Shown piece by piece: positions 26,838 through 64,000 of a DNA stretch of 64,000 nt. Every line of letters starts with the position of its first letter. Within the stretch, counting starts at the first letter, position 1. A program made the translations under genes and the position numbers. The notes under the pieces were generated by a model. It saw nothing but the letters and a program-made list of their open reading frames with translations, ran no database searches and was not told the DNA's origin. This DNA is from Chara braunii (lineage: Eukaryota > Plantae > Charophyceae): assembly GCA_003427395.1 (NCBI GenBank), contig BFEA01000014.1, forward strand, positions 87,754 to 151,753, read 5' to 3'.

Positions 26838-28019
26838 GTGACACTCCTAGCGGGGGGGATCTTGCACGGTTTTGCGTTGGGTTCGTTGGCTATGGAGGAG
26901 ATGGGGAGGACAATGGACCGCAGACGTCGTCTGTGGGTGTTGGAGCGCAGCGGCGGTGTGTGGAAGGACCTCCGGCGAGTGGGGGGTGAGCATGACAAGG
27001 TATTTGTGTGGTTTTGCAGACTCCCACGCCCGTTGTTCTTCGAAGTTCTCGCTCGCATCAGCCCGCACATCCAACGCTCGACCACGAACTTCAGACAGCC
27101 AATACCCGCCGGACAGAAGTTCGCATGTGCTCTGATGAGATGGGCAACTGGCGGATATTACAGGCAGTCCTCCCATAGTTTGGGCATGGGCCTCGCGAGT
27201 GATTTGCGCAGCAATGAGGACGTGGCAGACGCCCTAATCCGGGAGTACGGGCACCTGCTACGCTTCCCTACAGGACAACGGCTAGATGACGTGCAGAACG
27301 GCTTCGAGCGAAAAGGGTTCCCCGGGTGTGTGGGCGCAATAGATTGCACCCATCTATATATAGAGAAGCCGAAGGGAGAGCGATCGGAGTGCTATTATCA
27401 CCACACTGGGGGGGGTTCGGTTGTTGCACAAGTAGTGTGCGACCACGAGTGTCGGATTTGTTGCGTTTATGTGGGATGCCCGGGGTCTGTGCATGATTCC
27501 AGAGTTGTGCGCATGTCGCCACTCTACGTACAGGCTACGTCGGGTACAAGAGTGTTGGCTGAGGGGGGTGCCATGCTACACGACGGTAGACATATTGGGC
27601 GGTATCTGCTTGGTGATCAAGGGTACCCCCTTCTCCCTTGGCTCATGACTCCTTTCGGCCGGTTTGCTGTGACGTCAGCGGATCATGCCTTCGACGTGAG
27701 TCAGAGTGCAGCAAGGTCGTGCATCGAGCGGACATTTGGTCGTTTGAAAGCGGTATGGAGGAACTTCATTCGCAGACACATTTGCAACTTGAAGACTGTC
27801 TGCAAAGAGTTCATGGTCGTGTGCATTCTTCACAACCTCATGATTGACCACGGCGTGGAGATCGACCCGACATTGCCGGACTTGAACATCGAGGCTGCGC
27901 CGGAGGATGACCCTACTTATGGGGGGGATCTCGCCAAACACGTCAGGGCAAGCCTGGTTGAGCACGTGCGGCACCACACTGCAGTCTACGGAGCTTCGGC
28001 GCCATGCCCGTGGCGGTAG
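26838..28019 (+). CDS. Harbinger DDE transposase (HARBI1-like, DDE_Tnp_4); N-terminus probably frameshifted upstream of 26838
   Basis: Motifs FRLPR-like HTH lead-in, GFPGCVGAIDCTH, PGSVHDS, LLGDQGYP, IERTFGRLK and CILHN. Confidence 0.93.
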   Translation: MTLLAGGILHGFALGSLAMEEMGRTMDRRRRLWVLERSGGVWKDLRRVGGEHDKVFVWFCRLPRPLFFEVLARISPHIQRSTTNFRQPIPAGQKFACALMRWATGGYYRQSSHSLGMGLASDLRSNEDVADALIREYGHLLRFPTGQRLDDVQNGFERKGFPGCVGAIDCTHLYIEKPKGERSECYYHHTGGGSVVAQVVCDHECRICCVYVGCPGSVHDSRVVRMSPLYVQATSGTRVLAEGGAMLHDGRHIGRYLLGDQGYPLLPWLMTPFGRFAVTSADHAFDVSQSAARSCIERTFGRLKAVWRNFIRRHICNLKTVCKEFMVVCILHNLMIDHGVEIDPTLPDLNIEAAPEDDPTYGGDLAKHVRASLVEHVRHHTAVYGASAPCPWR

Positions 28020-30993: not shown

Positions 30994-32511
30994 TTAATCG
31001 AGATGAAGGGTCTGTATCCCGACCCGTTTCAGTGGAGAGACCTCCATTCGCTCCTTGCGGGCTAGAACCCCAACTAGCAACTCCAGAACACTGTTCCCAC
31101 CCCGCATCGCGTCGGCCACATCCCCTATCCGAGTGGCAATTGCGGTGCCTGCGTCTGCGGTGGCTTTGGCAAGGGAGGTGGCCGCTTTGTCCAGGCCATC
31201 ACACTACGAGTGTGTAGAATCTTCCATGGCCCTCCCCATACTCGTGCCACTGCTACTGCCATCTTCCCTTCTCGCCTTCCCGGTGACCATCCGCCTCATT
31301 TTCGCAGAATTATCCGATTCCGCGCATCTTTCATCCAATCCTCCCGCCGGTAATGGATCTGTTCCATCCCCCGATAGGTTCTTCGAAGCCAAGGTGTTGT
31401 CACACCTCATCGACGACCGGTTTAGTTTCCACTGCATAGCGTCCCACATCGGTTTTTTAAAAGACAGCGGGAGATTCTTCTCCTTTCGTTCCTCCACAGA
31501 TAGATCCCAATCCGACGACTGTTCAGACGTGTGACACTTTTCGACGATGAGCTTCGCCGTCTGCAGCATGTTGGACCACTTATTGCGGCAGTCTTCAGCG
31601 GTCCTGTGTTTGAAGCCAGCGTCCTTCATCCTATCGGTCACCCATGCATACCGCTCTTTGCTCTGCTTGAATCGGTGTTGGCCGTTAGCATCCGCCATAA
31701 GGGCATCGTCCTCGCCTATAACGAATGCAAGCTTCACTCGCTCGTCCAACGTCCATGGCACGCTTTGCTTCTTTTGAGCCGGCGGTCGAGCATTCGCCGG
31801 CCGCCTGCTCCCTTCCCCGCCTTCCGCACCCCGGCCCTGCGCATCACCCTGCTCGCCCATCGACCTTGCCATCACTGGAACAACACTTTCGTGTTTTTGC
31901 ATGACCGTCTTCACCGGCTCCTTCGGAAACGGCGGCGCCTTTGTCGTACGGTGAATCCATGCGAGTCTCGGGAGACACCGGCCGCATGTTCGTACGATTC
32001 CACGGGCCGTCCGTGTGAAAGCCCACCTGAGGAGATGGAGAACACCGCATGCCGAACGACCGCACCGTGCTCTGGGTGCATTGGGGAGACCAAGGTGCGC
32101 CACCCATGTCCATGTTCCGTGCGCCCGCCGCCGGCATGCCAAAACCTGCACCCATGCTTGTCCCTTCTGTGCATGCCCTCGCTGCATACAAATCGCACTG
32201 CTGTTGGACGGAGAAAGAGTGATCATCAACGGCGAAACCACCGTCGTCCCGCATGTCCACCGCTGGTGGACAACCATGCAGAAGGCCTGCATGCAACCTC
32301 TCGGGAGAATGTCTACCACACCCTCTATCGAAGGGCAACGACGGGGAAGGCGCACGTGAGGGGAAGTACTGACGTTGCACGACTGACGTTGATTGACGCA
32401 CGACGGCAAAGGAATGCATGCTCGGGAACCCCTGCCCGCGAGAATGGGGCCGTGCATGCACACGATCGTCGTGCATGTCAGTACTACCATCGGAACGAAC
32501 TTCGACGTCAC
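30994..32511 (-). pseudogene. Harbinger ORF2, Myb/SANT (trihelix-like) DNA-binding protein with a premature stop at 31204-31206
   Basis: WTLDERVKL...YAWVTDRMKDAGFKHRTAEDCRNKWSNM is a Myb/SANT pattern. The frame continues after the TAG as helical CDGLDKAATSLAKATADAG...LELLVGVLARK to a TAA at 30994. The true start is uncertain. Confidence 0.85.
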
Positions 32512-33901
32512 CCGTCCAATGTGTGGACTCCATTACCGAACTGCCACCGGAGCACACCGCGTAATCAATAACGAAAGGTGGCACCTTTGGCCCCACCCGT
32601 ACGGAGGATGACTACAGACGCCTGCAGAGAAGGCCAATGGCAACGAACGTGACAACTAACGACAAAAGCAAGACCCCTACCACGAAGGCGAGGACGATAA
32701 TGACTGCTACGCCCACAACGAGCAGCGACACATCTTCCACGGGGCCACCACAACGCCCGTTCGCCACGACGACAACCACATGACATCCCCTCACAGAACT
32801 GCAGCGACACCCCTCACCAGACCCATGTGTAGATGGCGTCGTGCTGTCTCCGATCGCCACGTGTCCACTTTTGACCTGCACACGCTCTCCTGCACTTCTG
32901 CCAACATCCGCTTGTCGATTACACAACGGAGGACCTGCGCTGCAGGCTGGAGATCGCAGTGAATGGACGACGAAAGATGCGGATGGGGTTCTCTGTGGGG
33001 CAGCCGTCGGAGTGAACAGCGACAACGACGTTGGAACAACCACATCACCACAACCACTGCCACGGAAAGAGGCTCGCGCAGCTGCACGTCCGGAGTTGAA
33101 CACAGGAAACTGCAGTAGCGTCCGGACCGCAGTGGAGGCATCCGAATGCGTCCAACAACAACTCCACAAAGGACGACCGTGGGACATGGAAGCACCTTGG
33201 ACGGAAGCCACACGCCTGAAACACGCAAGTCCTGTGAGTACTCGCATGGCAGATCGACCTTCCACTCGGTGCTCGAACGAAGAAGACAACTTCAGACCAG
33301 CAAGGTCGTGACAAAAACTGCGGCCACGTGATCGACAGAGAGCACAATGGCCTGTATTCCTTCTCTCCGCCCAAAGTACTTCTTGGCACGGTGGAAAATT
33401 TCGTTCAAACACCGTTTGAATTCAAATTTGCCGCTCCCGCGTTTCGAAATGCAGCGGGACCACGGCGGGGGACCATCTGAAGGGACCGCGTACGGCCCGT
33501 TTGGACGAAAAGTGCGACACGACGTTCGACCGCTGCGTTTCGGCCTGGTCCGCCCCGACGTACGAGACGCCCGTTTTGTGAACCACACGCGGCCGGCAGT
33601 GATGGAAACTTTTCGGCACTTTCGAGCCCCTACCCGTTTGGAGGACGTTTTGGAAGACGGCCGCCGGTTTCTGGCGGATATTTTCCAGCCGCCAGTCGAG
33701 TAGAAACACGGCCAACAGTGTTTCCAGAATGGCAGTGGGGTCTGTAAAAGACATTGGCATACCGTCGGCGATGCATCTGGCGGCCCAATGGGGTCCGCAA
33801 TTGCCCTTCCATGCCAAAACTTTTCCAGCCGCCGGTCAGTGGGATCCGGGTGTTGACGGTCCAGGTAATGACGGTCCGGGTGATGCCAAAACTTTTCCAG
33901 C

Positions 33902-36300
33902 AACGGATGGCTAAAGGAAAATGTCCAGGTGATGACGGTCTGCCTGTGGAATATTTTGAAATTGTATGGAATCAGGTAGGCCCGCCGTTGCTGCGTATTT
34001 ATGATAACATCCTACTTGGGGGTTGGCTCACAACGGATATGTCTAGAGGAATCATCTCTTTACTGTATAAAAAAGGGGACACAAATAATATTAGGAATTA
34101 CCGTCCTATCTCTTTACTAAATGTCACCTACAAGATCTTTGCGAAGGCTTTGGCCATTCGGCTGGCTCCACACTTACCTCATCTTGTGGCAACGGACGAA
34201 GGTGCCTTTGTTAAGGGCCGTTCAATTATGAACAACATCATGATGGCGATTGAAGCTTTGGAAATAGTTGGGAGAAAGGATAGGGCGGTGGCCATCATGA
34301 TGTTGGACCTTGAAAAGGCCTATGACAGGGTCAATTGGACCTTTGTCCAACCTACCCTAGAACTGATGAATTTCGGCCCGAACTTCTCTCGCTGGGTCAA
34401 CGTGATGTACTCCCTATCTACACCCGCAGTTTTGATCAACGGGACTCTGTCTGAGGAATTCCCCCTCACTCGTTCTCTGCGCCAAGGTTGCCCTTTGACA
34501 CCGCTGTTGTTTGTGATACAGATGGAAGTGGTACTTAATGCTATTAGGAAACATCCTCAAATCAGAGGTCTCACAATCCGATCGAAGATACAGGCGGTCC
34601 TCAAAGGGNACTATCGTAAAAATCTTGGAAGCAAGTGCTAGGTTCCCATGGAGCCCGGATAAAAAGGAAGGGAAATGCATGTCAAAATTGGCATGGAAAA
34701 AGGTCACAACACCTTTTTCATAAGGTGGGTTGAATATTACAGACCCGGGGGACCATAACCTGACAGTTTTGGCCAAATGGATGATAAAAATCGCTACATT
34801 AGAAGAGGAAAGGGTATGGGTAAGTTTAGCGGAGTACATCTTGCAATATGATTGGGGATTATCTAGAGAGGAAGATGTATGGGTGTGTATGCAGATGTCC
34901 TTTTTCTTGCGGCGGGGTTCTTCATCCCAAGTTCGGATTAACATCCTAAAAGCTTGGCAGAAACTCAGACCGAGGAATTTGAAGGTAGATTCAAAGAGTG
35001 CGGTGCTGAGGCAAAATCTCTTTGATAACCCGATGATCTTAGATCTACTAGGGGAGCCGTTTCTGGCCACTAATGCGAAAGGGTGTTTTGGTAGGAAGTG
35101 GGTGGAGCGGGGTGTAGTCGACATCAGAGACCTGTGGGACGAGGAAGGTAAACAATGGCGAACATAGAATAACTTACGAGAGAAACTAGGGGGACTGAGG
35201 CATGTTGGACCAAGAGCGGAAGACCTGATTACCGCTATCCCAATCGAATGGAAGGAACTTATGCTGAATGAAGGCTACACTAACTTAGCCTGACACCATC
35301 TGTAGAACTCAGACCGAGAGGCCCAAAGTTATGCACGAGTACTCTCAGATGAAGGAGATATTGTAATCGTAGAGGAATGGGTATTGAAAGTTAACGCAGG
35401 CAACTACATCTGCTACGACGGGACAGTGACACAGAGTCCGGAGGACTTGGGAGCACATGTGAGAGTGGAAATTTCCCCAAAATGGCGTGGGGGTAAACCA
35501 GTAAAGTTGTTATGAAGAGATGCCTCATTGGATCAAATGCGAATAGACCCTCAAAGCTTTTTCTGGGAAACAGTAGATCCTGAGCAGAGGGAGATTATAA
35601 TTGAGGACTACACAGTAAAATTGGGCACATTGCTGCTTAAACCCCCAGCAGAACCAGAAGAGCAAATGTGGAGGAAACTGTTGCAAACTCTGGGTCTGCC
35701 TGAAATTTCTCAGAGAGGTCAGCTGCAAGCTTTGTGGACTCAGCTACAATTTCTTCCATCCAGAAAGCATGCCGGCCTCCTTTGGATGCTCTCGAGAGGG
35801 ATCATTCCTACTGCTACTTGGCTACGAAAACGAGGAATGGAAGTTGACCCTATTTGTGTCCAATGTAATGCGGAGGAAGAATCCACCAGGCATCTGTTCT
35901 TGGATTGTTTGGTCGCTCAACAGATTTGAACATGGTGGAGGGAACACTGAAAAAATATGTCCAACAACGTCTTGGTCTGGAATGAAGACTGGATACTGAC
36001 AGGGCGGCTCCCGTCATATCTGGATGAGGGTATGTAGCCCAGGCGGCAAGGTCCATACTTCTCTGGGCACTATGGCAGGGAAGAAATGCTAAAGTATTCA
36101 AGAAATATGTATAAGCGCCGAAACAGATGCAGGTGGAAATACGACATCAGTTACGTACAGTCGTTTTGGTGGATTGGGCCCAGAGAGTGCAGAAGAAAAA
36201 AACGGATAAGAAAAGATGTCGTTGGTTTTTTAAGACCTGGGGGTTGAGTTTGAAGAATAAAATCGCTACAGTTACAGACCAGGGGAGACTCTCATTGGCG
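33902..36300 (+). pseudogene. LINE ORF2 remnant (reverse transcriptase and C-terminal zf-RVT)
   Basis: Motifs YRPISLLNVTYKIFAK, LDLEKAYDRV, LRQGCPLTPLLF and CVQCNAEEESTRHLFLDC. Contains stops and frameshifts; the YADD segment is missing near the ambiguous base at 34609. Confidence 0.92.
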
Positions 36301-40600: not shown

Positions 40601-42287
40601 AGATAATCTGCTTGTTCCCATAATACAGCTCATCCACCCACTTTTATCGTTGTCGGTGAGAAAAACCTTATACGGGTATCCGCCTTGGTTTATGCAAGTG
40701 ACAAAAAATAAGTTTTGACTTGAAATTTGAGTGCATTGTGCGAGTCTCGACTGTATTTTCTCTTATGCTACTAAATGTTTGACTGAAAGGAGAGAGTGTG
40801 TGGGCGCGCAGTTTTCAGGCGCACGTGGTATTTTTTATTGATGTTATAAAGTTTGTGCATCCTCGACCAACTTTCAATTTTTTATTAAACTACGGGCTTA
40901 CGACTAAGTGATGATTTTCGTTGGTCACTACATGTGACCGTGCGCTCATGCGGAGGACAGTTTTGACGACTATGCGGTTTTTGTGTAGTGAACTGAGTGA
41001 GCGGTGGGGTAAGAACACGGAACGAGCTCCACGCAGTAGACGCGGAAGCTTGACGGTCGTGGATTCAAGTGGTAGGTCAAGGTGTGGTCTAGGTATGTGT
41101 TGGTAGGGCCGAGCGTCACACAATACCCACTTATATTGATTTGCCCAGCTACTAATGCAAGCCTTGGGCCTAACACTATTGGTTACAGTGTCGGACTTTC
41201 ATCAAGGAGATTCCACGATTAAGGTCAGCGGGCGACGACAGGGGAACGGTGGATCAGTTTAAAGGAAACCAAGGGGTTAAGGGTTCCGTGAGACTATCCC
41301 CTTTCGTTTTATCGTCGGCCCAAAAAGGAGGGCTAAGAAAGGAAGAAGATAAAAGACTTTGGAAAAAGGGAAGAAGAGAATGAGAAGGGAAAGAGGGAAG
41401 AAAGAGTCAAAGAAGGGAAAAGAAAGTTAAAGAAATAAAACATTTTGTCATACCTGTTATGGATTGCTCTTTCTTATTTTTTTAAATGTTATTATATCGA
41501 TTGTTTTTTCTTATTTTTAAGTGTTGTCATATTGTCGATCTGGTCATAAACATGGTCAGATATATTGAACACGGTTATTATTTGCCCATCACTACAACTG
41601 CAAATAACAAGCACGGTGGTGGCCACGAAAGTCGAGATCCTTTGGGTAAGGTGTGATGCCTCTACCTCTTCCTACTGGACTCATAGTGTGAACTTGGACT
41701 CGAGTCTAGGAGACGGTCAATCAGATAGAACCTCAATTGTCATGCTCCGCTTGGAGCACATTCAGTTATCCTTGAGTAACAAAGAAAGTAAGAGGAAATG
41801 CGACGATGGGAAGAGAGGGAAGAAGAAATAAAAAATAGTAAAGAAGGAAGGCCGAGGGAGGGAGGAAAGGAAATGAAAGGAGAAAAACTTAAGGAAAGGG
41901 ATAATGGTTGAAAAAAATAAGAGATGAAGTGAGTAGGGAGGACAGGGAGGAGTGCTCGCGATCCATTGTCAATGGATAACAAATGTTAACTCAGGTGTCG
42001 CTACGCAAATGTGGTTCTGCCCAATGCTCTGAATGTCAAAGAAACGAGATTCAACCAAGGGCGTTGAGGGTATTGATAACTTTCTCTTAAGGAGACAAAA
42101 TGTTTTATGACTACGGTTTCGATTACTCGTGGTCATCATTTTAAATGAAAATTCATCATCGTTATGATTGTTTTCTCTCCTCGTGACTATCACGATTATG
42201 TGTTTCGGTGATAGAATGTATAACCATCAATCATGACTGTCAAACTTGATTGGTCAATGAAAGTAACAACGTTGTTGTTGACTTTAA

Positions 42288-42453
42288 AACACTAGTACCT
42301 TTGGCGTCCGGTTTCGACAATTACTTGTCAACTTCCGAACTTTCAGGAGGCCGCGCCCGACGTTGATCAATCTGATCAGCGGCCGTCATTTTGTTTCGGC
42401 CTTCTAAAATATTGGAGGTCGAGTATTTTCGAACCGACAAAGGTACTAGTGGT
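42288..42453. mobile_element. TTAA-flanked MITE
   Basis: TTAA|AACACTAGTACCTTTG...TCGA ... TCGAACCGACAAAGGTACTAGTGGT|TTAA. Confidence 0.7.
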
Positions 42454-42689
42454 TTAAGAGACACATATTAAAATTGTTTATAAAATATTTTTATTTTATC
42501 CTCTTTTCTAAATTTCTATGTAAAATCCAACATGATGTCTTATATTTTTTATTGGCATCACAGTGAGGATCATGCACAGTGGCGTGCGGTGTTGACAAGA
42601 TGGAGAAACCGATATGAATAGGAAAACTTTATAAGAGGAAAATCGAAAAAAAACACCAAGAAGGAACTTAGGATGCTAGAGTTTGGGAA

Positions 42690-44500
42690 AAGGTAGTAGG
42701 ATCAAGACTCCATTTTGAGGTGTCCTATCACTTGCATGAATGTGTTTATACAGTACTGAATAAATAATAGGATGCTCCAGTGTAAGTTATCGTATTGTTT
42801 AACCACATGTGTATTGTTCGTAATAATTGTTTGTATGATATCAAACTGGTAGTGGGCGGCTTCAGTAAGGGTTGTCCTATTACTCATTTGACCTTAGTCT
42901 GAATAATTGTGAGGGGTAGTAGAGTACTCAAGTGAGGGTCACCCTACTACTTGTTTGAGGCTAAGATGACTAAGTATTGAAAGAGTGGTGGGGTGCTCCA
43001 GTGTAAGTGACCCTACGACTTGTTTGAACCTGTTTGTTTGTCTCGTATTGAAATGAATGTGGGATGCTCCAATGAGAGTTATCCTACTGAATTGTCGATA
43101 TGTTTGTTGTTGGTAAAAATTGTTTACTCGACATCAAACCGGTAGTAAGAGACTTCAGTGAGGGTCATCCGATTACTTGTTTGATCTTAGTCTGATAAAT
43201 CTTGAAGGGTAGTAAAGTACTCCAATGAGGTTCTCTCTATCACTCATTCGATAGTAGGATGACTAAATATTGAAGAGTGGTGGGGTGCTCCAATGTGAGT
43301 TACCTCACTACTTATCTGAATCAATGGTCTGCCTGACATTGGAAGAGTGTTGGGATACTTCAGTGCAAGTTATCCTACTACTCTTCTGAGTTTGAAGTTA
43401 TCTAAGCTATGTGAACTTCATAATATTGAGCAAGCGAAAATGACTCAGGTACGAGTCATCTTATCGATTGTGTGTGCAAAGATTGTTTGTATATTCATCT
43501 TTATATATATACTTACAACTATATTTTACCAGGTGAACTTGAATGATAAAATAACTCTAGTACGAGTTTATTTTACTAATCGCATACATATCAAACCGAT
43601 AATATGAGACTTTAGCGAGGGTCATCCTATTACTTGGTAGACACTAGACTGAGTAATATTCAAAAGGCAATAAGAGGCTCCAATGAGGGTTATCCTATCA
43701 CTTGTTTGGAATAGCGCAGTATTCGATAGATATTATGGGGCTTCAGGGAGGGTCATCATATTATCATTTTGAATGTAAACAAAACTAGTATTAAATAAGT
43801 AGTATGATAATATGATACTCCAATGAGAGTCATTCTATTTATTTGTTTGAAGTCAGACTGCGCTATCTTCAAGACATAGTAGGTCACTCCAGTGAAGATC
43901 GTCTTATTACTAACTTAAATTATATACTAACCTATGCTAAAATAAAATGTGATGTGGTTTGTTTATTAGACGTTAAAATAATAATGACTTGCTCCAGTGT
44001 GAGTTATCCTACCGTTTTTTTAATGTTGAAGAGTAATGGGGTACTCCAATGTGAGTTATCCTACTACTTGTCTGAAATATATATATTGTTTCGTTTATCG
44101 TTATCCTATTGTTTGTGTGTATGAGAATTGAAAGGTATTGAAAGAGTAGTAGGATACTCCAATGTCAGTAATTTGACTACTTGTTTGAATTGTATGATAT
44201 TGAAAGGGTAATTGGATATTCCAGTGTGAGTTATCTAACTACTTGTTTTAACTCGATTTGCCTGGTATTGAACAAGTAGTCAAACATTCCAATGCGGGTG
44301 AACTTACTACTTGCGTATGCCCAAACTGAAAAGAATCGAGAGAGTGAGAGATAACTATGAATTGTCTTTTTACTTGTATAAAGATAGGTTGATCGGATTC
44401 ATAAAACAATAGAATAGAGACTTCAGTGTGAGTCGTCATACTGCTCGATTAAATCATATTGATTAACAACAATATAGACGAAGGCTTTAGTGAGGGTCTC
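42690..44500 (+). repeat. Hairpin array A (about 24 units, ~67-70 bp period in the core)
   Basis: Unit consensus RGTAGTAGGATACTC-CA(G/A)TGT-GAGTTATCCTACTACT, an imperfect inverted repeat, separated by variable AT-rich spacers. Confidence 0.85.
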
Positions 44501-44939
44501 CATTTAGTCGGATTAGACTATAGTCCTCCGTTATATTAAAAGTGCGTATTACTGAACTTCAGGTGATGTCACATCAATAACAAAGGGGTGTTCAGACCAT
44601 GTTGACATACATGTGATTGAATGTCATCTTAACCTACTTGAAGATGACTCATAATGAGTTTATACACGACCTCATCATGTTGCCTTATGGTAACGCGTCG
44701 ATTTGTCGACTCAACCCTCACTCACCCTCGACACCCACACTTTGTATCGACCTCTGCACTAAAGACATTTTTGATTTTTGGGCCATTGTCTAAAGAGTTT
44801 GTTTTTGATTTAAAACAATGATTGAATGACTAAAGTCAGATGAGACTAAATGACTAAGTCAAAAAAAAAATGTATCACTGAGAGGATTAAAAGTATAATT
44901 TCAATGTGAGTGAAACTAAACAAAATGGTAGACTCTGTT

Positions 44940-45455
44940 TGTAACGAGCGTGAGGCTGAGGGTGAGCCGAGGGAGAGGAGAGAGAGGGAGAGAGTGAGAG
45001 AGTGAGAGCACACACACACACTCACTCACTCGACACGACGGACTCGGACTGAGGATCGGACGCAGACACAGTGGCAAGGCACAAAGTCGAAGTCTTGGAT
45101 TCCCGAATGCCGAAAACAGCAAGTCACACTGAGTACGAGTACAGCAGCAGAGAACTGGTACGAGACTGGTCCCCGTACCTGTCTCTTATACACATCTAGA
45201 TGTGTATAAGAGACAGGCCGGCATAAGTACCGGTGACACGTACGATACCAGGGGCATTTCTGCAAAAGGCCCCGAGGGCAGAACTGAAAAATGCAGTATT
45301 TGAAAGTGGCGCCCGAATTGCAGCATGGCGCCAGTTGTCCGAAATCCTATAGTACCAAAGGAGGGGTTTGGAAAAAGGGTGCCAGACCGAAAACGGGATG
45401 CAACCGAAACAGCAAAAGATAGACCAGGGATCGAGCCCTGGCGGAGTCCGTAACA
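44940..45455. mobile_element. Nested LTR-type insertion (apparent solo LTR, possibly a collapsed longer element)
   Basis: TGTAACG...CGTAACA termini with 5-bp TSD CTGTT at 44935-44939 and 45456-45460. Confidence 0.85.
45179..45216. other. Complete 38-bp Nextera mate-pair junction adapter (artefact)
   Basis: Exact CTGTCTCTTATACACATCTAGATGTGTATAAGAGACAG. Confidence 0.99.
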
Positions 45456-46160
45456 CTGTTAGAATTAATATAATGCGTTTGATTTTTATTGCAGATCATC
45501 AAAACGACCATCCATACGTTATTCACCGTAATACTCGTGTTGAATAACTTATGCTCATATGAGTTTTGACTCAGACACTTCATCGACGTGTAACCTGTGT
45601 ACATGTGGTTTGGATTCTCGACTTTTATCGTTCTTGATGTTAAAATATATTAGGATCATTGACAAAGTTAAGTGCCTCATACAGTTCACATTTCATTGAA
45701 AGGCCACAAACCCATTTTATTTTTTATGTATGATTAAACCAAGAGCCTATGTTCGTTTTTATTCAAAAAATCAAAGATTTGTACATTCTGATGTTTGTTT
45801 TTGTTTGTGTAAAAGTATAAGGACATCTCTTTGCCTTTAAGTCTTAATCCTTGAAATTTATTTCATTATATGTGTATCGATTGGAAAGGGTTTATACAAC
45901 ATGTATAATTTATGGGTCAATACAAATAGATTAAAACGTTATATGCGCAAAGGTTCGTAAGTAAAGTGAATCTGAATTGAAAGTCGGTCCGGGAGTTCCG
46001 CCCCGATGCCCGACACGTGTACGGGTCAATCTTAGACGTTCAACCACTCGTATGCTTGACTTACTTACCTCTTCGATTGCAAGTAAAAACACTTATTATA
46101 TGAGTCAATAACTCGGCAGCCTACCTAAGGGTGGTGACAACCCCTCAGGTACAAGTGAGT

Positions 46161-46835
46161 TGTACCTCGTGGAACCCTTTCCTGTCGCAGAGAGCTTGAG
46201 AGGTATAGTTGGCAAGCACGGCCGAAGTGGTATCTCCGCTGACTCAAAAGCAATACCTTAATCCTGCGTGATATGACCGTGAGGTCTGACACTTGCCCCA
46301 GGGTGTGGAACCATCGTGCCCGACAACGATATATCAGAAGGACAATATTGGATACATTGTTGTTTGGTGAAGGAAGAGGTTGTCTACGATACCTAAGTTT
46401 ATTGCATCGCTCTTATTTGACTTGTATCTCAATGTTTGTTGCTTGTGTCTGCCACGTTTTGCGAGATACACAATTATCTGGTTCATAATGTGATGTTTGT
46501 ACCTCGTGGAACCCTTTCCTGTCGCAGAGAGTCATGAGAGGTATAGTTGGCAAACACGGCCGAAGTGGTATCTCCGCTGACTCAAAAGCAATACCTTAAT
46601 CCTGCGTGACATGACCGTGAGGTTCGACACTTGCCGCAGGGTGTGGAACCGTCATGCCCGACGACGATATATTAAAAGGACAATATTGGATACATTGTTG
46701 TTTGGTGAAAGAAAAGGTTGTCTACGACACCTAAGTTTATTGCATCGCTCTTATTTGACTTGTATCTCAGTGTTTGTTGCTTGTGTCTTCGACGTTTTGC
46801 GAGATACACAATTATCTGGTTCATAATGTGATGTT
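46161..46835. repeat. Tandem duplication of about 338 bp covering the LTR A 3' end and its flank
   Basis: TGTACCTCGTGGAACCC...TGTGATGTT occurs twice (46161 and 46498). Confidence 0.9.
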
Positions 46836-47737
46836 GCAATTTGATTTTATGTCGGTCGCTCTCGTTCATTTTTCTTGCTTATAATAATTATTTATATTAT
46901 TATTATTCTTTGTTATTCTTATTGTCTGTTATTATTCTTTGGTCTATACCGTTTTTTCTGATATAATTGCAAACACAATAAGATACGAGCATGTGAACCT
47001 CGTATCTAGCTGGAACTATAACCGAGTTCACACACGCTGGCCTGAAGCTAGTCCACACGTACGCATAATTATTTAGACGGAGGGCAGGAGTTTGAAAGGA
47101 AAAGGTAGAAGAAAGAGAAGAAAGAGGAGGCAAAAAGTAGAAGAGGAAGTGGGAGGAAGCTAAAAAAATGAGAAAGGAGAAGGTGATGAAGGAAGTGGGA
47201 AGAAAACACGATAAGTAGTGCAAGCTTCGAGCATGATTCATTGTGATTAGGTGTCACTGCAGTGCCCTCTGGATCAAAAGTTTTCAAAACTCTCTATCAG
47301 ATCTTGAGTGACTCCTCCTACATCTTGAGAGCCTCAACGTTCTATTTACTCCCACCCTCTCTAACTATATTTGAGGCTTCTCTAAGGGAAAGACAGTTGA
47401 AAGAGTGTTACTCTGACCAAACTGTGCTAAGACTGTACCAAGCGGCACCTCAAGCTGCCTATCGATTCAGAGAACTCTGTTGGAGTTCATGTGGAAGTTT
47501 GGAGATAGAGAACGATAAGGTGCGTGCGTGTAATCCTTTTCCCGTATACCCTTACATAAACGACCCTATATCAGAGTGCGTGTGTGACTATATGTCATAT
47601 ATGTCTCGACTTTCTTTAGTACAGAGCATCTATAAAGTAAAAAAACTATATATTGTGTAAAAAAGTTTGTCTGAAGGAAGGAGGAAACATTAAACGAACG
47701 TAGTAGAAAAAACATAGTTTGTTTGGGATTGGAGAAA

Positions 47738-50025
47738 AGTGGTAGGATGGAGACTCCAATGTGAGTCGACCTACCGTCTAATGTTCCGTACCGAACAGAT
47801 AGTGGTACTCCTGTGTGAGTAATCCTACTATTTACCCATATATGTATTGTTCCTAAGAGTCACGTGTTCAAAATCAAATTAGTATTAGGAGTCTCTGGTA
47901 AGGGTCGTCCTATTACTTGTTTGAAGGGTAGTACACTACTCCAGGGAGTCTTATAAGTCTGAAGGGTAGTACACTACTCCAGGGAGAGTTGCATTACTAC
48001 TTGTTCGAGACTAGTAAGATGACTAAGTGTTGAAGCTGGTGAGGTGCTCCAGTGTGAGTTACCCTACAACTTGTTTGAACCTGTGGTTTGTCTGATACTG
48101 AAAAAGTGGTAGGATGCTTCAATGCATGTTATCCTACTACTCTTGTGACATAAAGTTATATGTACATTATGTGTTATTGCGCAGGAGGGATGAAAACTCC
48201 AGTATGAGTCATTATGTTGCTTGTTTATGTGCAGATCGGTTACACATATGTGTTTAAGTATACATAATGATAACCTTTTAGTAGACGAATAACGAGATGA
48301 CTTCAGTGTGAGTTATTTTAATGTTTGCCTGCATGTTAAACTTGTAGAAGGATGCTCCAGTGTGAGTTGTCATATTTCTTGTTTGACACTAATTTGATTA
48401 GACCAGGTATTAAGGGGTAGTAAGTAACTCCAGTGTGAGTTGCTTTGCTACTTGAATGTATGCACGAATGCTTGACATTAAAAGGTAGTAAGGAACTTAA
48501 GTGTGAGTTGCTTTGCTACTTGAATGCATGAAAGAATGCATATGACTGAAAGATAGTTAGATACTTCATTGGGAGTTATCCTACTACTTTTTTGTGCATT
48601 TTTAACATATACATATATAAAAACTGATTATCTATGATTTGTTCACACGCATGTGGCTTGTGAAAAATTGAACCAGTAGTCATATACTCCTGCGTAGTAT
48701 GGCGAACGTATTCACGCCCCTTCACATTCGCACAAACGTGTTATCGCGAACATGTTTGGACGAACATAACTTTTTTTCGTTAAAAAAATAAAATAAAATT
48801 ATTTTTTCGGTTTTTGATCTTTAACTCATGATTGGCTATGAATTTGAACATGACTCCAAGGTCAATGTTACTTGTATTGTTATTTTACATAACATTTTTT
48901 TTTTTTCCAGATTTTTCTGTGAACGTTTTCTTTTTTTTTTAAATATTTTTTATGTTTGCGATCGGAGGGTTTTTCACGCTTGTTCGTATTTGGGGGAACA
49001 TGTTTGCGTTCGCCTCCGAACGCGAACACGTTGCTACGTAAATCCTGTGAGGGTCGTCCTACTAATATTATGAAGTGAGACTACACAATCCTCGAAGGGT
49101 AGTAGGAGGCTTCAGGGACGGTCAACCTATTATCAACTTGAATCAAAACTGACTGATAAGGAAAAAAATGGTAGGATGTTTCCGTATGAACCATCCTACT
49201 GCTTATTGTCTACTTTCTTACATGCCATTTGCTTAAATGGGTAGTAAAATATTCCATCGAGGGTCATCATACTACTTATTTGAAGTTAGTTTGCATAATA
49301 TTTGAAGTAGTAAGATACTTAAGTGAGAGTCATCCCATTACTTGTTTGGATATTAATCTGCGCAATATTCAAAAGGTAGTAGGAAACTCCACTGAGGGTC
49401 ATCCTACTACTTTTTTTTAGTTAGAGTATACAGTATTCAAGAGGTAGTAGGGGACTCTAGAGAGGGCCATTCCATTACTAGCTTGAAGTCTACACTAATT
49501 TGTGTGATGTGATTTATTTGTTGGAAACTAAACAAATAGTGAGGTACTTCAATGTGAGTTATCCTACTGTTTGCTTAGTATCGAAAAGTAATGGGGTACT
49601 CTAATGTGAATTATCCTACTACTCGCCTAAAATACATGTATCTATATATATATATATATATTGTTTGATTTATTGTTATCCTACTATTTGTGTGTGTCAC
49701 GGTGCGGATTGTATGGTATTGAAAGAGTAGTAGGATACTCTATGGCAAGTCATCCGACTACTTATTTGAACTAAGCTTGTCTAGTATTGATCAAAGTGGT
49801 AAGAGACTTCAGTGCGAGTCAATGTACTACTTAGGGGTGTTAAAACTAAAATAAATGAGATACCAAAAGAGATATATGTATATCTTCCTCCTACTTGTTA
49901 AATAATAGATAGGTCGAGTTCATAAAGCGGCGGGAATAAAAACTCCAGTGTGAGTCATCCTAGTGCTCGATTGAATGCGTATTTACTACTAAGTAGTAGA
50001 ATGAAGGCTTCAGTGAAAATCTTTA
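47738..50025 (+). repeat. Hairpin array B (about 26 units)
   Basis: Same unit consensus as array A. One unit is split by the MITE at about 48689-49042. Confidence 0.85.
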
Positions 50026-50056
50026 AACTATATATTTACATTTAGTCAGGATCATA

Positions 50057-50336
50057 CCTGTGTAGCATACCGAACATGTTCGGAGCTTTTCCAGACGTCC
50101 GGCCGAACATATTAAAAAAAATAATAATAAAAAATGTTTCTTATTGGTTATAAATTTGAGCATACCCCCAACGCAAACGTTGTTTGTTTTATTATTTTAC
50201 ATAACATATATTTGTTTCAGATTTTTCTGAGAACTGTTTATTTTTTTATTTATTTTTTATTTTTTTATGGTCGCGTTCGGGGGGTTTTGGCGCTCGTTCG
50301 CGTTTGGGTTCGAACCCGAACATGATGCTACACAGG
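50057..50336. mobile_element. MITE with CCTGTGTAGCAT TIRs (second, decayed copy at about 48689-49042)
   Basis: ATA|CCTGTGTAGCAT...ATGCTACACAGG|ATA, with internal CGAAC/GTTCG repeats. Confidence 0.85.
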
Positions 50337-50704
50337 ATAATATAATACTCATCCTTTATATTTAGAGTTCGTGTTATTGAACTTCAGATGATGTCATATC
50401 AATAGCAAAGAGGTGTTGAGACAATGTTGACTTGTGTGTGATTGCATGTTGTCTTAACCAATAACATTCGTTATGAGTTTATACAAGACTACATCCTGTT
50501 GTTTTATGGTAACAAGTTGGTATTTGGTCGACCTTTGTACTAAAAGTCATTTTCATCGATCTCTGCACGAAAAGTCATTTTCTGATTTTCGAATCATTGT
50601 CTAAAGTGTATGTGTTTGGTTAAAAATTGTCATTTAATGACTAAAGTTGGATTAGACTAAATGACTAAGTCTAAAAAAAGATGTATGACTGGGAGGATCA
50701 AAAG

Positions 50705-51610
50705 TGTAAGTGCAATGTGGGTAAAAGTGAACAAATGGTTGACTCTGCTAGAATTGTGCAATGCATTTTGATTTTGTTTGCCGGTAAGTCAAACGACCAA
50801 TCATGTGTCATTCACTATGTAACTCATGTTGACAAACTTATATTCATCAGAATCGTGACTCAGACATTTCATCGACGAGGAACCTTTGAACATTTGGTTT
50901 GGGTATCCTACTTTCATATTTATTAATGTTAAGAAGATTATGATCATATGTAAGACCAAAAGTCTTATACATCATATATTTTATTTGAAAGGTCACGAAC
51001 CTATATTATATTTTATATATGATTGAAAACTTTGTGAATTATGATATTTGTCTTTGCTTATGTGAAAATATAAAGATAATTTTCTGCCTTTAAGTCCCAA
51101 TCCTTGAAATTTATTTATTACATATATATTGATTGAAAATTGTTTTTTCAGTATGAATAATTTATGGGATAATTGCAAATAGATCAAATACTTTGTATGC
51201 ACGAAAGTTCGCCTGTCAAGTCGATCTGAACCGTAAGTCGGTTCGAGAGACCACCGGCCAGATGCTCGATACATATACGGGTCACTCTTAGGCATTATAC
51301 TGTGTGTATGCCGATGTTACTTCGATCGAGCAAACACCCGACCTACCTCTACGATTGCAAGGAAAAACCTTCGCATGGAAGGCAGTAGCTCACCAGGGAT
51401 ACACCTACCAGAAGGTGGTGACAGACCCTCAGGTAGATATGAGTTGTACCTCATGAAGCTCTATCATGTCGCAAGGAGCGGCGAAAGGTATAACTGACAT
51501 ACACGCTCGGAGTGGTATCTCCGCTGACTCAAAAGCAAATACTTAATTCTGCATGAAACGACCGTGGGGTCTAACACTTATTGCAGGGTGTGGTACCGTC
51601 GTGCTCGACA
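50705..51610 (+). mobile_element. LTR B, Ty3/gypsy-like
   Basis: TGTAAG...CGACA termini, PPT-like GGGAGGATCAAAAG upstream and a PBS-like sequence downstream. Confidence 0.65.
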
Positions 51611-51612
51611 GG

Positions 51613-51630
51613 TGGTGCCGTTGTCAGGTA
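51613..51630 (+). other. Degenerate tRNA-Asp primer-binding site
   Basis: TGGTGCCGTTGTCAGGTA against TGGCGCCGTTGCCGGGGA (14/18), 2 nt after the LTR end. Confidence 0.6.
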
Positions 51631-54600
51631 TCTCGCTTTCCAACGGAGTTTCTCAAAGAACAAAATCGGGAGTGGTGAGTCGATGATCACAACAAAATGA
51701 TAACTTTTGATAAAATTAAAATGATTTATTATATACGAACCTGATTATAAATGAAAAAACGCTAAGAGCAATATACTTAAAAAAAATGCGAGACATCATA
51801 TGGACAACACGCACAGATGTCGCCTTACCCAAAAAATTGACTCTCTACATGGGTCCTAAAAAGATAACGGACTCGAGTTGGGTAACCGACGATCTAACCA
51901 AAACGACAGTCAGTAATAAGTGTTTAACATACACTTAAGGTATTTATTTTTAAATAAAATAATCAAGTTTGTCTAGGCCGAATCCATTTGGAATTACATA
52001 TACCAAAGATAATAACTATTGATTATGAATATTTCATAAGGATAGAGCGAAAAAGGGATAAATTTTTACCTTCTCACAAAAAAGTCACGCGAATATAGTT
52101 GTGAAAATTTTGGGGGTACCCATGCTGAGATGTAGGTTCGAAGTTCGTCTTATAAAGTCTAGTAACGAATATATTTTAACCTTTATAATGATAACTGTTG
52201 TTAAAAATTTGTGGATCATGATAATATAATAATTTATAGTAATGCATTTGTTTGTGTTTGTGTCACTATGCGACAAGTTACTCGAACAAGGACGGAGATG
52301 CTTGTCAAAACTGTTTAGCCACCTGAGTTGTTCTCGTACATACCTTGATGCACATGAATAAGAAATATATATGGTTAAGGTGTTAGCCTTAAAAAATGTT
52401 AAAGTTACATGTAACAGAAATTTTGATTGTCTACCAAAACTCTAAGGAAACAGATTCAGTTACAGTTAGACGTCTAGGCAATACGATAATATTAGATATT
52501 ACTACGACCTAGTAAGTGAAACTTAGTGAGAAATTGGTGTATTTATTTTCCCGGCTTCTGTACAATTGTCACGTATCCAACTATTTTTAAGCATGCACTC
52601 AATACGTGACCACTTCTTGTATCTCGAAGGGTGTCAAAGCGACAAATGTTACCTCATACAGCTTGTTTATTTTTAATATATTATTGCCTATACTTAGACC
52701 GTTCTCCTTGATGACAATTTCTACACCAACTTGAATTCCAACAAATATTCGTAATAATAAGGGATTTGCTTTGACAACTGAAGCATTACAAAGATATTCA
52801 ATCAAATAGTATAAAGTTAGCAAGGAAAACCGGTCGACTTACAAATTTTTCCTTATCTAGTTTCGTCGGTTTTTTGTTTCCCTTTGACATGACCTGAAGG
52901 CTGACCGTGACACATATTTTTCAATTGACGCTATGCGTTAGCCATTGACTTTTATACAAAACCATATTTATAGTGTCTGCACTATAAACCTTTAAGGTAA
53001 ATGTCGTGAGTTAACCCGTTCACACTATTCCTAGTCATGTTTGCTCTATCTGAGTAGTTAGTAACACGATCGTTCATATTATATTGTTACTTCCATATTA
53101 TTTTCACTATAGTGGATACAACACAATGACTTACACATTGAGTTCATTATAGTTTCTGCTTTTTGTGCTCGCTGGCCATGTGCTACATCGCTATCTGACT
53201 TGTACATTAAGTTTCTTCGGCTATGCCGCTTATGGTGTGTGGGTCAAGTGCAAGAAAAGAGAGAGAAGAATGGCAATAGAAAGACTCTAAGAGACCCATT
53301 GATTTAGTAAACGAAAGAGAAAAATTAAAGGAGAAAAGGAAGAGAAATGAGAGAAAGCAAGGTTTCGTCGTCGCCGTTGTCACGCGCGACCGTCTCTCAC
53401 CCTGCCGGGAGCACTGAACCTCACAGTTGTGTCACGAAAGATTTTTTAGAGCGAAAAGAACCAGCCACTACTCCGACTGTGCGCTTCTACTATACCTCTT
53501 ACGACACCCCACGACAGGTGGAGGTGTCGCGAAGTACAACTTACCTCTACCCTAGAGGTTGTCACCACCCTTAGGTAGGCATATCCATGCTGAGCCACTG
53601 ACCCACATGCGAAAACTTTTACTTGTCTTTGTAGAGGTGGGTCGGTCGATGGGGTTTGCTGTATCGTCGAAACATAGAAATGGGGTATGCGCGGTAAGAC
53701 GCCTAAAACTGACACATTAGTCAAGTCATGTCCAGGATGTGATCTCCCTATCCTAAACTTCTAGATTTTTAGATCGAACTTTTAGAAGGCTGTCTATTCG
53801 GCTTCTGCGTTTTAAAAATGTGTTATTCTCCTGACAAAATGATCAAGGTATCAATCGAACCTTCTTACTACCAAGGACATTCTATCTTACTTAACGAGTT
53901 ATAACTTAACTGAACATAAGATAGTACAGAGGTTACATAGGACAAATAATGAATATGGGGGTATTACCGCCGAGAACCCTTCCCACTTTCACAAGTGTTG
54001 TAGGTCTGAGACTCTTCACGATATCAAACTCAGTTCAATCCAAACCACACACAAGACAAACCTGCACAGAGTAATGTAAAGACAGTTCATATGCCATGCA
54101 CTAACGACGTCAACCATCAATCCACAGCATTAACCTTGTCCCTACAAATTTTCAGTCCATTTTACTTTCAGTGATTGTCCAATTCGCTTCGTTGGGAATC
54201 AAATCTTCCAATCTCACCGTCGCTACCCTCTTTCGTGCCAACTTAGCCTTTAACTACTTCTCTGAGTTTCGGAGTCGACGCCAATATCTCTTTTAGATTT
54301 AATAACTCATTATGCCCGTCAAGTAGATAATTGACCAAGTTTACTACTAGATTTCCCCCCTCTTCAATCGATGTTTGGTACTTCCACTTCTTCTTCGATT
54401 TTTCCTAGCTTTCTCTTTCCCTTCAGTAATCTTCTGTTTGCGCTTCTTGACTCTCTGTTCAGTGCGTTTATCCTCTTCTTCCCTCAGTTGTTCATCTTGA
54501 TTTTCTTCATCATCGCCTATGTCAATAGAGGCTTCACCAAGAGGCGGCAGAGAAGTTTGCTCCTGTTGCTTGGATACATTGCCTCCCTTAGATCTGGGAG

Positions 54601-57476: not shown

Positions 57477-59520
57477 AGAAGGGCCACAACTGGCCAAGGA
57501 GCGAGTTGGGTTGTTGGAGCTGGCGCTTTTGAAACATAGGGCATCATAGTTTGTTGAGAGCTTTGCCCCTTTCCAACTCCTTGTTTTCCCGTTGTTTGGT
57601 TCTTGGTTTTCTTCTGGGTCATTTTTATCTTGAGTGCTTGCTCAGAATCTCCCTCTTTTTATTTGTCTCCTTCATCTTACTTCTCGTATCTTCTTTTGTT
57701 TACTACTTGACCAACCGTCATTACTTTTCCTGGTGCCATTTATTCATTCATCTCCTTGAATTGGGTCACTACACTGCTCAAGACTCCTCCTAAAGCTAGA
57801 TCCACTCCCTGAATAACACTCACTTCCTTCTTTTTCTTTCTCTCCATTTTCACTTGATGGTGAAATACCTGATTCAAATCTTCAGAAACCAAAATTCTTT
57901 TTATTGTTTCTCATGACGTCTTTCTACTTGGCGCACCCCCATGTGTAAGTTTCATGGCCTCATACCCTGAGAACTTCCCTAAGAAGATAACACACTGCAT
58001 TTCCTCGGAAAGTCCTAAAACTTGCTCCGCCATTTTTTGAAATGTCGTCGCAAATGCTTCTATCGCAGTAAAATCATTTCTCTTCAAGTTTTGGAGCTGG
58101 TCGACTGTCACTAATCTGTCTCCCAATATACATTTCCGTTGCATTTCTTTCTTGAAATCATTTCAGTCCCCTTGGGTATCGGTCACGATTTTTTCGACCT
58201 AAGGGCGGAATTCGCACCATACATATTCAAATAATTAAGCAAACTTATCAGTTGATATCAGTTGATTGAAGACTTGTTCCAACAGCTCTAGCCAGTAGGC
58301 ACCCGTTCTCCTTTGAAAGATAATATTTCTATTTTTGGCAGTTGCGACCTTTTGACAACTCTTCTTTTCAGTATTCTCACAATTTTGGCGACAATTATGA
58401 ATCCATGTCCTCCGTTCTCATTGACGTCTCCCATCTTTTCCCACAGTCCTCAATCAATTTGTGTTTCTTATACGCACACGCAAAAACGGCGAGTTTTATG
58501 TTATTTTTATTTTTTTATCTTTTCTCTTTTAGGTTTTTGCCTTGTTTTTTTCCCCATCCCACGATATTATCCAAGACTTGTTCAACCCACAATTTTAACC
58601 ACTTTACACGATCCTTACCTTACTCCTACCATATTTTTCCCCTTTTTCCTGATCTTAAATGATATACACTAATTCCCCCATTCATATCTCTCAATCACTA
58701 ACCCTATCATGCTTAAAATATTTGAGACATCCTCCCTTTTATACAACAAAAATGGGGATTGGTTCTATCCTAACTTTCTATTGAATGAACGCTAGTTCTC
58801 CTAAAATCCTACCCTTCCACTTTTTTTTGAGGACATCCAGTCCCTGGTCAAGGAGTCACACACCATACTGAACATTATGGGGATACCGTCAATGCACACC
58901 TTGTTCCTAACTTCGACCTTGAGTTTTTTCCAATAAGTCTGCCTTGGCTCCATAAAGTAGATCCGGACGTACGTGTTGTCGAGCGCATCGGCCCCTGCAC
59001 GAGCGAGGGCCCTTCCGACCGTGTCACGTAGGAGAAACTTAGTATTTCATATTTTAAAGACAACTCGGGGACGACACGGTAACCCGCACTGACCCTTCGC
59101 CGCTCTGGCCGAGTGCGCCAGCTGTACATCTGGCGGTCCCCTACGACAAGATAGGTTCTCACAGGGCACAACTTACCTTCCCTAAGGGGTTGTCACCACC
59201 CTTAGGGGCGTATCCCCGCCGAGCTACCGGCCCACGTGCGGAGACTTTTATGATGCAATTGTAGAGGTAGCCCGACCGAGGGCTTTGGCTCGTTCGTTGT
59301 AGCATAGGTACGCATGGTTAAACGCCAAAGTGGACCCGTCCTTGGGGCGCTGATCTCCCAGGAATCAGACCGACGTCAGTCGACTAGGACGTGGTATTCC
59401 AAGCATGAGAAAATCTCAATCAATCCTAGTCCCTTCTTTCAAAGACAATAAAAAGTTAAACATACAAAACTCGTTCAAATGAAGACTCACGTCAACGTAA
59501 GTTGATTTATCTTTCAAAAT

Positions 59521-62500: not shown

Positions 62501-64000
62501 NNNNNNNNNNNNNNNNNNNNNNNNNNNNNNNNNNNNNNNNNNNNNNNNNNNNNNNNNNNNNNNNNNNNNNNNNNNNNNNNNNNNNNNNNNNNNNNNNNNN
62601 NNNNNNNNNNNNNNNNNNNNNNNNNNNNNNNNNNNNNNNNNNNNNNNNNNNNNNNNNNNNNNNNNNNNNNNNNNNNNNNNNNNNNNNNNNNNNNNNNNNN
62701 NNNNNNNNNNNNNNNNNNNNNNNNNNNNNNNNNNNNNNNNNNNNNNNNNNNNNNNNNNNNNNNNNNNNNNNNNNNNNNNNNNNNNNNNNNNNNNNNNNNN
62801 NNNNNNNNNNNNNNNNNNNNNNNNNNNNNNNNNNNNNNNNNNNNNNNNNNNNNNNNNNNNNNNNNNNNNNNNNNNNNNNNNNNNNNNNNNNNNNNNNNNN
62901 NNNNNNNNNNNNNNNNNNNNNNNNNNNNNNNNNNNNNNNNNNNNNNNNNNNNNNNNNNNNNNNNNNNNNNNCAAGGCACCCCAAGAACCTCTACCCACCA
63001 AGCCACTACAAGCACCTACAGACCGAGCCACTCCAAGCACCAATCCACCGAGCCATTCAAAGGACCTACACACCGAGCCACACCAAGCACCTACCCAATG
63101 AGGCCCTACAAGTACCTACCCACCGAGCCCCTCCAAGTACCTACCCACCGAGTCACTCCAAGCACCTACATGTCGAGCTACTCCAGGCACCTATACCGCC
63201 CGAGCCACTCCAAACACGTATACCGATTGAGCTTCTCCAAGCACCTATACCGATGGAACCATTCCAAGCACCTATACCGACCGAGCCACTCCAAGCACCT
63301 ACCGACCGAACCACTCGAACCACCTACCCACCGAGCCACTCCAATCACCAACCCACCAAGCCACTCGAAGCACCTACCCACCGCGCCACTCTAAGCACCT
63401 ACCCACCGAGCCACTCCAAGCAGCTACAGCGACAGCGCCAACCCAAGCACCTATATTGACGGAGCCACTCCAAGCACCTATACTGGCCGAGCCACTCCAA
63501 CAACCTATCGACCGAGTCATTCCAAGCACCCACCGACAAAGCCTCTCCAAGCACCTACCCATCGAGTCAGTCCAAACACCTACGGACTGAGCCACTCCAA
63601 GCACCTATCGATTGAGCTACTCCAAGCACCTACGGACTGGGCCACTCCAAGCATTTTAAGCCAATCCAAGCACCTATCGACCGAGATATTCCAAGCCCCT
63701 ACCAACCGAGCCACTCCAAGCACCTACCCGCCAAGCCACTCCAAGCACCTACCCATTGAGCCACTCCAAGCACCTACCCACCGAGCCACTCCAAGCACCT
63801 ACCCACCGAGCCACTCCAAGCACTTACCCACTGAGCCACTCCAAGCACCTTCCCACCGAAAAACTCCAAGCACCTACCTTTTGTGCCAATCCAAGCACCT
63901 ACCCACCGCGCCACTTCAAGCACCAACCGACCGAGCGATTCCAAGCACCTACCGACCGAGCGACTCAAGCACCTACTGACCGAGCGACTCGAGCACCTAC
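59521..64000. repeat. ~23-bp minisatellite (CCGAGCCACTCCAAGCACCTACC), interrupted at 60718-61818 and by an N gap at 62450-62971
   Basis: Read directly; many divergent units. Confidence 0.95.
60718..61818. mobile_element. Non-autonomous element with CTGAAGTGGTGAA repeats inserted in the minisatellite (N gap 61035-61224)
   Basis: Ends CGTTAACC like the related elements. The variant unit CAGCCACTCCA on both sides is a possible TSD. Confidence 0.65.

Follow-up and report, generated by a model that had tools for sequence, protein, structure and literature searches.

The DNA analysed here, referred to as the window, is a 64,000-nucleotide stretch of a Chara braunii contig. A row of tandem hairpin-forming units on the + strand (array A, 42683-44500) opens a non-coding block (block A, 42659-46662, + strand), in which the array is followed by segment X (44520-44937) and segment Y (45456-46662), with an LTR-like sequence between these two segments. 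A second, paralogous block (block B, 47705-51610, + strand) is located downstream and contains an array of its own (array B, 47746-50041, + strand). Upstream of block A, a high-copy transcribed repeat (word depth ~1e4) ends at 42300-42457, and loose ends of reads pile up at 42456-42458, ~230 bp upstream of array A. A PIF/Harbinger two-gene set was also identified in the window, consisting of an ORF with a transposase domain of the DDE_Tnp_4/plant-transposon type (26838-28019, + strand) and a nearby ORF with a DNA-binding domain of the Myb/SANT-like type (31204-32511, - strand).

Array A and its hairpin units

A covariance model was built from 21 clear units of array A; it spans 55 positions and describes a stem of 14 bp that closes a 6-nt loop and carries a single bulged nucleotide on its 3' arm. 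When the whole 64-kb window was searched with this model on both strands and with filters off, 42 matches on the + strand were obtained at E≤0.03 (best E-value 6.5e-14), of which 20 are located in 42754-44454 and 22 in 47787-49976. No hairpin units were found in the window outside arrays A and B, and the matches on the - strand are weak echoes of the + strand hairpins and nothing else. Array A possesses a further, marginal unit at 42683 (E 0.04) and degenerate units at ~43423, 43536, 44334 and 44457, so that the covariance-model matches and the unit table give a total of ~25 units (~21 significant and ~4 degenerate) with a median spacing of 68.5 bp. A preliminary description of this locus had reported hairpin units recurring in tandem and had proposed a covariance model as a means of checking them; the recurrence was borne out, and the row of hairpin-forming 68-bp repeats in array A is confirmed to be real. 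Two units that were quoted there as altered in sequence while still able to pair are likewise present (43430-43473 and 43541-43584).

The hairpin core of a unit is ~35 nt in length. Its loop has the consensus C-A-R-T-G-W, its stem is 14 bp at most, and the bulged base on the 3' strand is T (or C or A), above which lies an upper helix of 4 bp. The best-preserved unit (43267-43321, + strand) retains the full 14-bp stem with a T bulge and has a folding energy of -18.3 kcal/mol, the mean energy of the hairpins being -8.7 kcal/mol as opposed to -4.5 kcal/mol for shuffled sequences. Units of the array are 20-30% diverged from one another, with stem and loop equally conserved. The spacers had been described as poorly conserved, but the 10 nt that adjoin the hairpin at each end are about equal to the stem in conservation, and it is only the middle of the spacer that varies, mostly through indels.

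The units are homologous, lie head to tail and recur with a regular period (62-68 by TRF). Self-BLAST further showed a higher-order repeat at 42770-43379 (+ strand) made up of two ~290-bp copies of four units each (42770-43088 and 43062-43379, 75% identical). Array A is a tandem repeat with dyad-symmetric monomers, which is a known kind of sequence. Surveyed centromeric satellites are rich in dyads, with inverted repeats of less than 10 bp (PMC5889037). The Chara arrays resemble dyad-symmetric satellites in their non-coding head-to-tail units, their higher-order repeat, the inverted repeat within the monomer and their decay by drift. They differ in the length of the inverted repeat (14 bp), in being short (~2 kb), low in copy number and composed of units that are 20-30% diverged, and in a bias towards wobble pairs on the + strand, which is not predicted for a purely double-stranded repeat.

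Two other origins for the hairpins were considered and rejected. Independent insertions of tiny MITEs are excluded by the higher-order repeat and by the unit order that arrays A and B inherited in common, and the conserved flanks of the hairpin differ between its two sides. A cluster of miRNA or hairpin-RNA precursors was rejected on the length of the stems, which are ≤14 bp and would have to be ~21 bp or more for a Dicer-like enzyme.

The loop had also been likened to that of an iron-responsive element (IRE). The iron regulatory protein/IRE system is an animal system and is not known to be used by plants. The array loop is similar in having six bases, often C-A-G-T-G-N; however, the array hairpin has its unpaired base, a T, on the 3' arm at a distance of four pairs from the loop, whereas in the IRE a C is unpaired on the 5' arm and five pairs separate it from the loop. 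The array loop also varies (C-A-R-T-G-W), and its upper helix is of 4 bp rather than the 5 bp of the IRE. No Rfam family, IRE_I and IRE_II included, gave a match at E≤1 in 41000-53000. The resemblance is therefore not upheld, the bulge being on the wrong arm and of the wrong base.

The duplicated block and the solo LTR

Self-BLAST of the window showed that a block of ~4 kb is present twice in direct orientation, with 42659-46662 colinear to 47705-51610 and ~77% identity in the aligned non-array DNA. Array B comprises ~21-25 units of the same family as those of array A. The order of units is colinear between the two arrays in four segments, and this colinearity extends to one degenerate unit that is common to both; the array was therefore finished before the block was duplicated. 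A sensitive BLAST comparison of the DNA between the blocks with that upstream of block A and downstream of block B found no homology past the block ends, and so both a simple three-copy tandem and an LTR-internal-LTR layout are rejected. Among ORFs of at least 70 aa in and around both blocks and in the 10 kb downstream, no Pfam domains were found in or around the blocks, nor any domain of a transposon or retroelement. When the limits of the blocks were examined for TG..CA termini with target duplications of 4-6 bp, only candidates at chance level that are inconsistent between A and B were obtained, and no terminal inverted repeats flank either block.

The two blocks differ in their insertions and repeats. 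Block B carries two MITE-like insertions in or just after array B (~48685-49050 and 50057-50336), which are ~75% alike and absent from array A. The terminal inverted repeats of the second are 12 nt long and perfect and, together with a 3-bp duplication (ATA), are in the style of Tourist/PIF-Harbinger elements. In block A, a 338-bp unit is tandemly duplicated (46160-46835, 94% identical), of which block B has a single copy; parts of this unit recur at ~53489-53580 and 59141-59206, with word depths of ~600-2200. Part of segment X (44664-44860; 50490-50700 in block B) is a repeat of ~180 copies (word depth ~3300) that predates the duplication of the blocks.

According to the preliminary description, array A belonged to the non-coding 3' part of a retroelement and preceded the polypurine tract (PPT) and LTR of that element. 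The sequence in question is a solo-LTR-type insertion of 516 bp with TG..CA ends (44940-45455, + strand). It is flanked by a 5-bp direct repeat, CTGTT (44935-44939 and 45456-45460), and block B has the corresponding empty site at ~50742-50754. Word depth over the insertion, measured in an independent DNA sample, is 1.4e4-2.7e5, as against ~18 for single-copy DNA. The family has roughly 10^3-10^4 genomic copies and exceeds the array in abundance by a factor of ~10^3-10^4; sequencing reads derived from other copies of the LTR break off exactly at 45455-45457. Given its own target duplication, its absence from copy B and its very different abundance, this LTR is an independent, later insertion of a very abundant family and is unrelated to the array. 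As block B lacks the insertion and retains the empty site, the entry of the LTR into block A followed the duplication. The purine run that had been taken for a PPT ahead of the LTR lies inside the insertion, which begins at 44940. The placement of the array in a retroelement 3' region thus falls. The LTR insertion is transcribed, with reads in both orientations in three RNA-seq runs. No second copy of it was found within the window, and no Rfam hammerhead in 44940-45455.

Tandem repeats in the 3' UTR of Tat/Ogre elements of the Ty3/gypsy group are a known source of satellites (PMC7004042). Array A is like them in being a short non-coding tandem array near an LTR-like sequence. It differs in that the LTR is a separate solo copy, with no gag/pol upstream and no LTR pair, so that the defining position of such repeats, from the last ORF to the element's own PPT and LTR, is not the one occupied by array A. 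The nearest coding sequence of any retroelement is that of a LINE-type fragment with a reverse transcriptase (RVT_1 followed by zf-RVT, 33754-35929, + strand), ~6.7 kb upstream; this is the only reverse transcriptase found, and no gag/pol domain is closer to the array than this. An origin of the array in the 3' UTR of this LINE was rejected, since the reverse transcriptase and zinc-finger domains end ~6.7 kb upstream. The LINE ORF gave no match to phage records by megablast.

Within the LTR, at 45179-45216, the assembly contains a Nextera mate-pair junction adapter, in which two Tn5 mosaic ends stand back to back. It replaces ~9 bases of the repeat, and loose ends of reads occur at 45179, 45197 and 45198. 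Adapter contamination of an assembly can create false element boundaries, and sequence limits in the vicinity of such a site should not be relied upon. The adapter in the LTR also accumulates RNA reads in which library adapter is present. A second Nextera junction adapter is present at 7390-7420, directly beside a gap of 796 N.

Base pairing, divergence and expression of the arrays

The preliminary description had proposed that covariation in the stems be examined; the covariation is weak and the outcome mixed. Across all units, 81.9% of stem cells are paired, compared with 79.6% when the 3' partners are shuffled; the former figure is inflated by the choice of units with a model that favours paired sequences, and it becomes 77.6% when marginal units and gaps are counted. 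In 31 stem cells both partners are changed, compared with 20 after shuffling, and the covariation score is 0.320 against 0.292, a score as high as that observed being reached by 17 of 500 shuffles. RNAalifold retains only the apical 4 bp. Parsimony on the unit tree showed that GU to WC and AC to WC make up 67% and 61%, respectively, of the changes leaving each state, figures no different from the proportion of transitions. Common descent of the units qualifies pairing statistics of this type. The array was also compared with a neutral simulation that is tree-aware, strand-symmetric and matched for divergence. The pairing of the array lies above that of the simulation (68-74% +/- 4), and its 31 compensated cells exceed the 15 +/- 5.5 simulated (P 0.007, ~0.01).

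A strand asymmetry of the kind that had been suggested as a way of separating RNA from DNA function is present. Across all units, 95 cells are G.U and 38 are A.C when read on the + strand, and the RNA of the + strand is more stable than that of the - strand in 32 of the 42 units. The difference between G.U and A.C cells is 57, compared with 0 +/- 25 in the simulation (P 0.01-0.04). The skew of G over C is even stronger in the spacers than in the hairpins, and part of the G.U surplus may therefore be compositional. Sites at which A and B agree were taken as the state before the duplication. They hold 12 G.U pairs and 3 A.C pairs, and 3-4 compensated pairs where ~0.7 are expected; stem positions are derived in 13% of cases and flank positions in 22%. 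This older surplus of pairing on the + strand is modest and mainly precedes the duplication, and it suggests that a hairpin in a single + strand (RNA or single-stranded DNA) may have been favoured while the array was taking shape. With more pairing and more G.U than neutral, strand-symmetric decay gives, a plain neutral satellite throughout is an imperfect fit.

What has happened since the duplication was assessed from gapped alignments of orthologous segments of A and B, with segments X and Y serving as the non-array DNA of the blocks. Orthologous stems have an identity of 0.769 and loops one of 0.767; the 10-nt flanks reach 0.750, spacers 0.712 and the X/Y DNA 0.772. The stems thus decay essentially as fast as the spacers and the neighbouring DNA, an outcome that the preliminary description had itself named as contrary to its reading. 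The array is non-coding and evolves at the local neutral rate (0.769 for stems vs 0.772 for block DNA), as is expected of a minisatellite. Since stems, loops and unique DNA have drifted equally (~23%), neither copy of the array is under detectable constraint today; a comparison of two copies has low power for weak selection. Among 13 orthologous unit pairs, single changes at paired positions comprise 24 between WC and GU, 13 between WC and AC and 10 between WC and mismatch, and 4 of 14 double changes are compensated, which is about chance level. The stems show an excess of transitions (ts/tv 2.2 vs 1.25-1.39 in spacers and unique DNA, P 0.03-0.09), and gap columns number 4 in hairpins as against 107 in flanks and spacers.

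Transcription was assessed in three oligo-dT RNA-seq runs from one study (0.9-1.7 billion letters each), a type of data blind to small and non-polyadenylated RNA. Poly(A)+ RNA has zero depth over 42497-44663 and 47225-48200 in all three runs; coverage near the arrays is confined to neighbouring high-copy repeats. In the independent DNA sample, the word depth of the array is 19-131 against a baseline of ~18, corresponding to 1-7 copies at ≥90% identity. Contigs from this sample cover the array with ~0.8% differences. A small number of further arrays of the family are also represented in part among these contigs; their hairpins match but their spacers differ, which indicates that the family is present elsewhere at low copy number. 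A search of metagenomes with a degenerate 20-mer of the hairpin core returned seven contigs, none of which fits the unit model (0/7), and these matches are attributed to chance.

Origin and decay of the arrays

Array A is probably an old, relic tandem repeat with a palindromic core that was duplicated together with its block and is now decaying neutrally and in silence. It would have begun as a ~68-bp monomer containing a 14-bp inverted repeat and would have been amplified in part as a four-unit higher-order repeat of ~290 bp, most likely through unequal exchange or replication slippage. The colinear blocks show that the array, once finished, was copied in direct orientation along with ~2 kb of neighbouring non-coding DNA to give array B, after which stems, loops and unique block DNA drifted alike, as the common divergence of ~23% shows. 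The pairing that remains is probably for the most part the residue of an originally near-perfect palindrome under transition-biased decay, as a transition turns a Watson-Crick pair into a wobble pair and two transitions produce a pair that appears compensated. The array may once have been inside an active mobile element at the time when the hairpin was favoured.

This origin accommodates only part of what had been proposed in the preliminary description, namely a multivalent structured RNA rather than a neutral satellite. The part that stands is that pairing and strand bias exceed those of the neutral simulation; the stems nevertheless drift at the neutral rate and the array has zero depth in poly(A)+ RNA. 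The pre-duplication signal (12 G.U vs 3 A.C, 3-4 compensated pairs vs ~0.7, derived stem sites at 13% vs 22% for the flanks) would also be accounted for if the array were the relic of a once-functional platform borne by a mobile element, in which a multivalent, folded + strand (RNA, or single-stranded cDNA or DNA) served, for example, as docking sites for the carrier element's own protein while the element was active, with blocks A and B as its dead and diverged copies. The greater stability of the + strand fold in 32/42 units, the pairing above that of the tree-aware simulation and the discrete ends of the blocks, with no homology beyond them, are consistent with such a relic. However, the blocks bear no hallmark of a mobile element (a consistent TG..CA end with target duplication, terminal inverted repeats or a coding domain), the family is of low copy number (1-7 copies at ≥90% identity), the statistics become borderline once ascertainment is allowed for (77.6% pairing) and RNA depth in the oligo-dT runs is zero. 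We consider a relic of this type possible but rather unlikely. A more specific version holds that A and B are two dead, non-coding copies of a mobile element whose row of + strand hairpins formed a multi-site docking strip for a protein encoded by the element or by the host, and that they represent a diverged member, conserved in its stems, of an apparently genome-specific class borne by retroelements; this version is more doubtful.

The palindromes might alternatively act at the level of DNA, either as sites for a dimeric DNA-binding protein, for which the subterminal repeats of some DNA transposons are a precedent, or as cruciform-prone dyads of a satellite with a role in chromatin. Both arms of the hairpin keep a recognisable consensus sequence beyond mere complementarity, the array is silent in oligo-dT RNA-seq, a PIF/Harbinger transposase and related MITEs are present in the window, and there is good documentation of satellites in which short dyad symmetries abound (PMC5889037). 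A double-stranded site, however, predicts no strand asymmetry, which is at odds with the 95 G.U and 38 A.C cells. The arrays are also short (~2 kb) and low in copy number, unlike a centromeric satellite, the blocks lack flanking terminal inverted repeats and the stems drift at the neutral rate, all of which makes an element acting on DNA improbable. A structured RNA array that functions at present, whether as a packaging or export platform, as a sponge for protein or as a source of small RNA, is very improbable: ~80% of stem cells still pair and the + strand folds are better than those of the - strand and of shuffled sequences, but depth is zero in three poly(A)+ runs, the stems have diverged between A and B as much as unique DNA, stems of 14 bp fall short of the length required of Dicer-type precursors, Rfam returned no matching family and array B has tolerated two transposon insertions.

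Read as a decayed tandem repeat, the locus taken alone changes little. It may serve as a calibration case, as pairing of ~80%, a wobble bias and a few units that appear compensated can arise largely without present-day selection, and transition-biased decay of a palindromic monomer can be the source of such signals. The comparison of paralogues, in which stem divergence is set against that of neighbouring unique DNA, is a cheap and decisive control. A further repetitive stretch of the window is found at 59523-64000, where a satellite-like, internally repetitive region broken by N gaps matches itself at 72-86% identity at many offsets.
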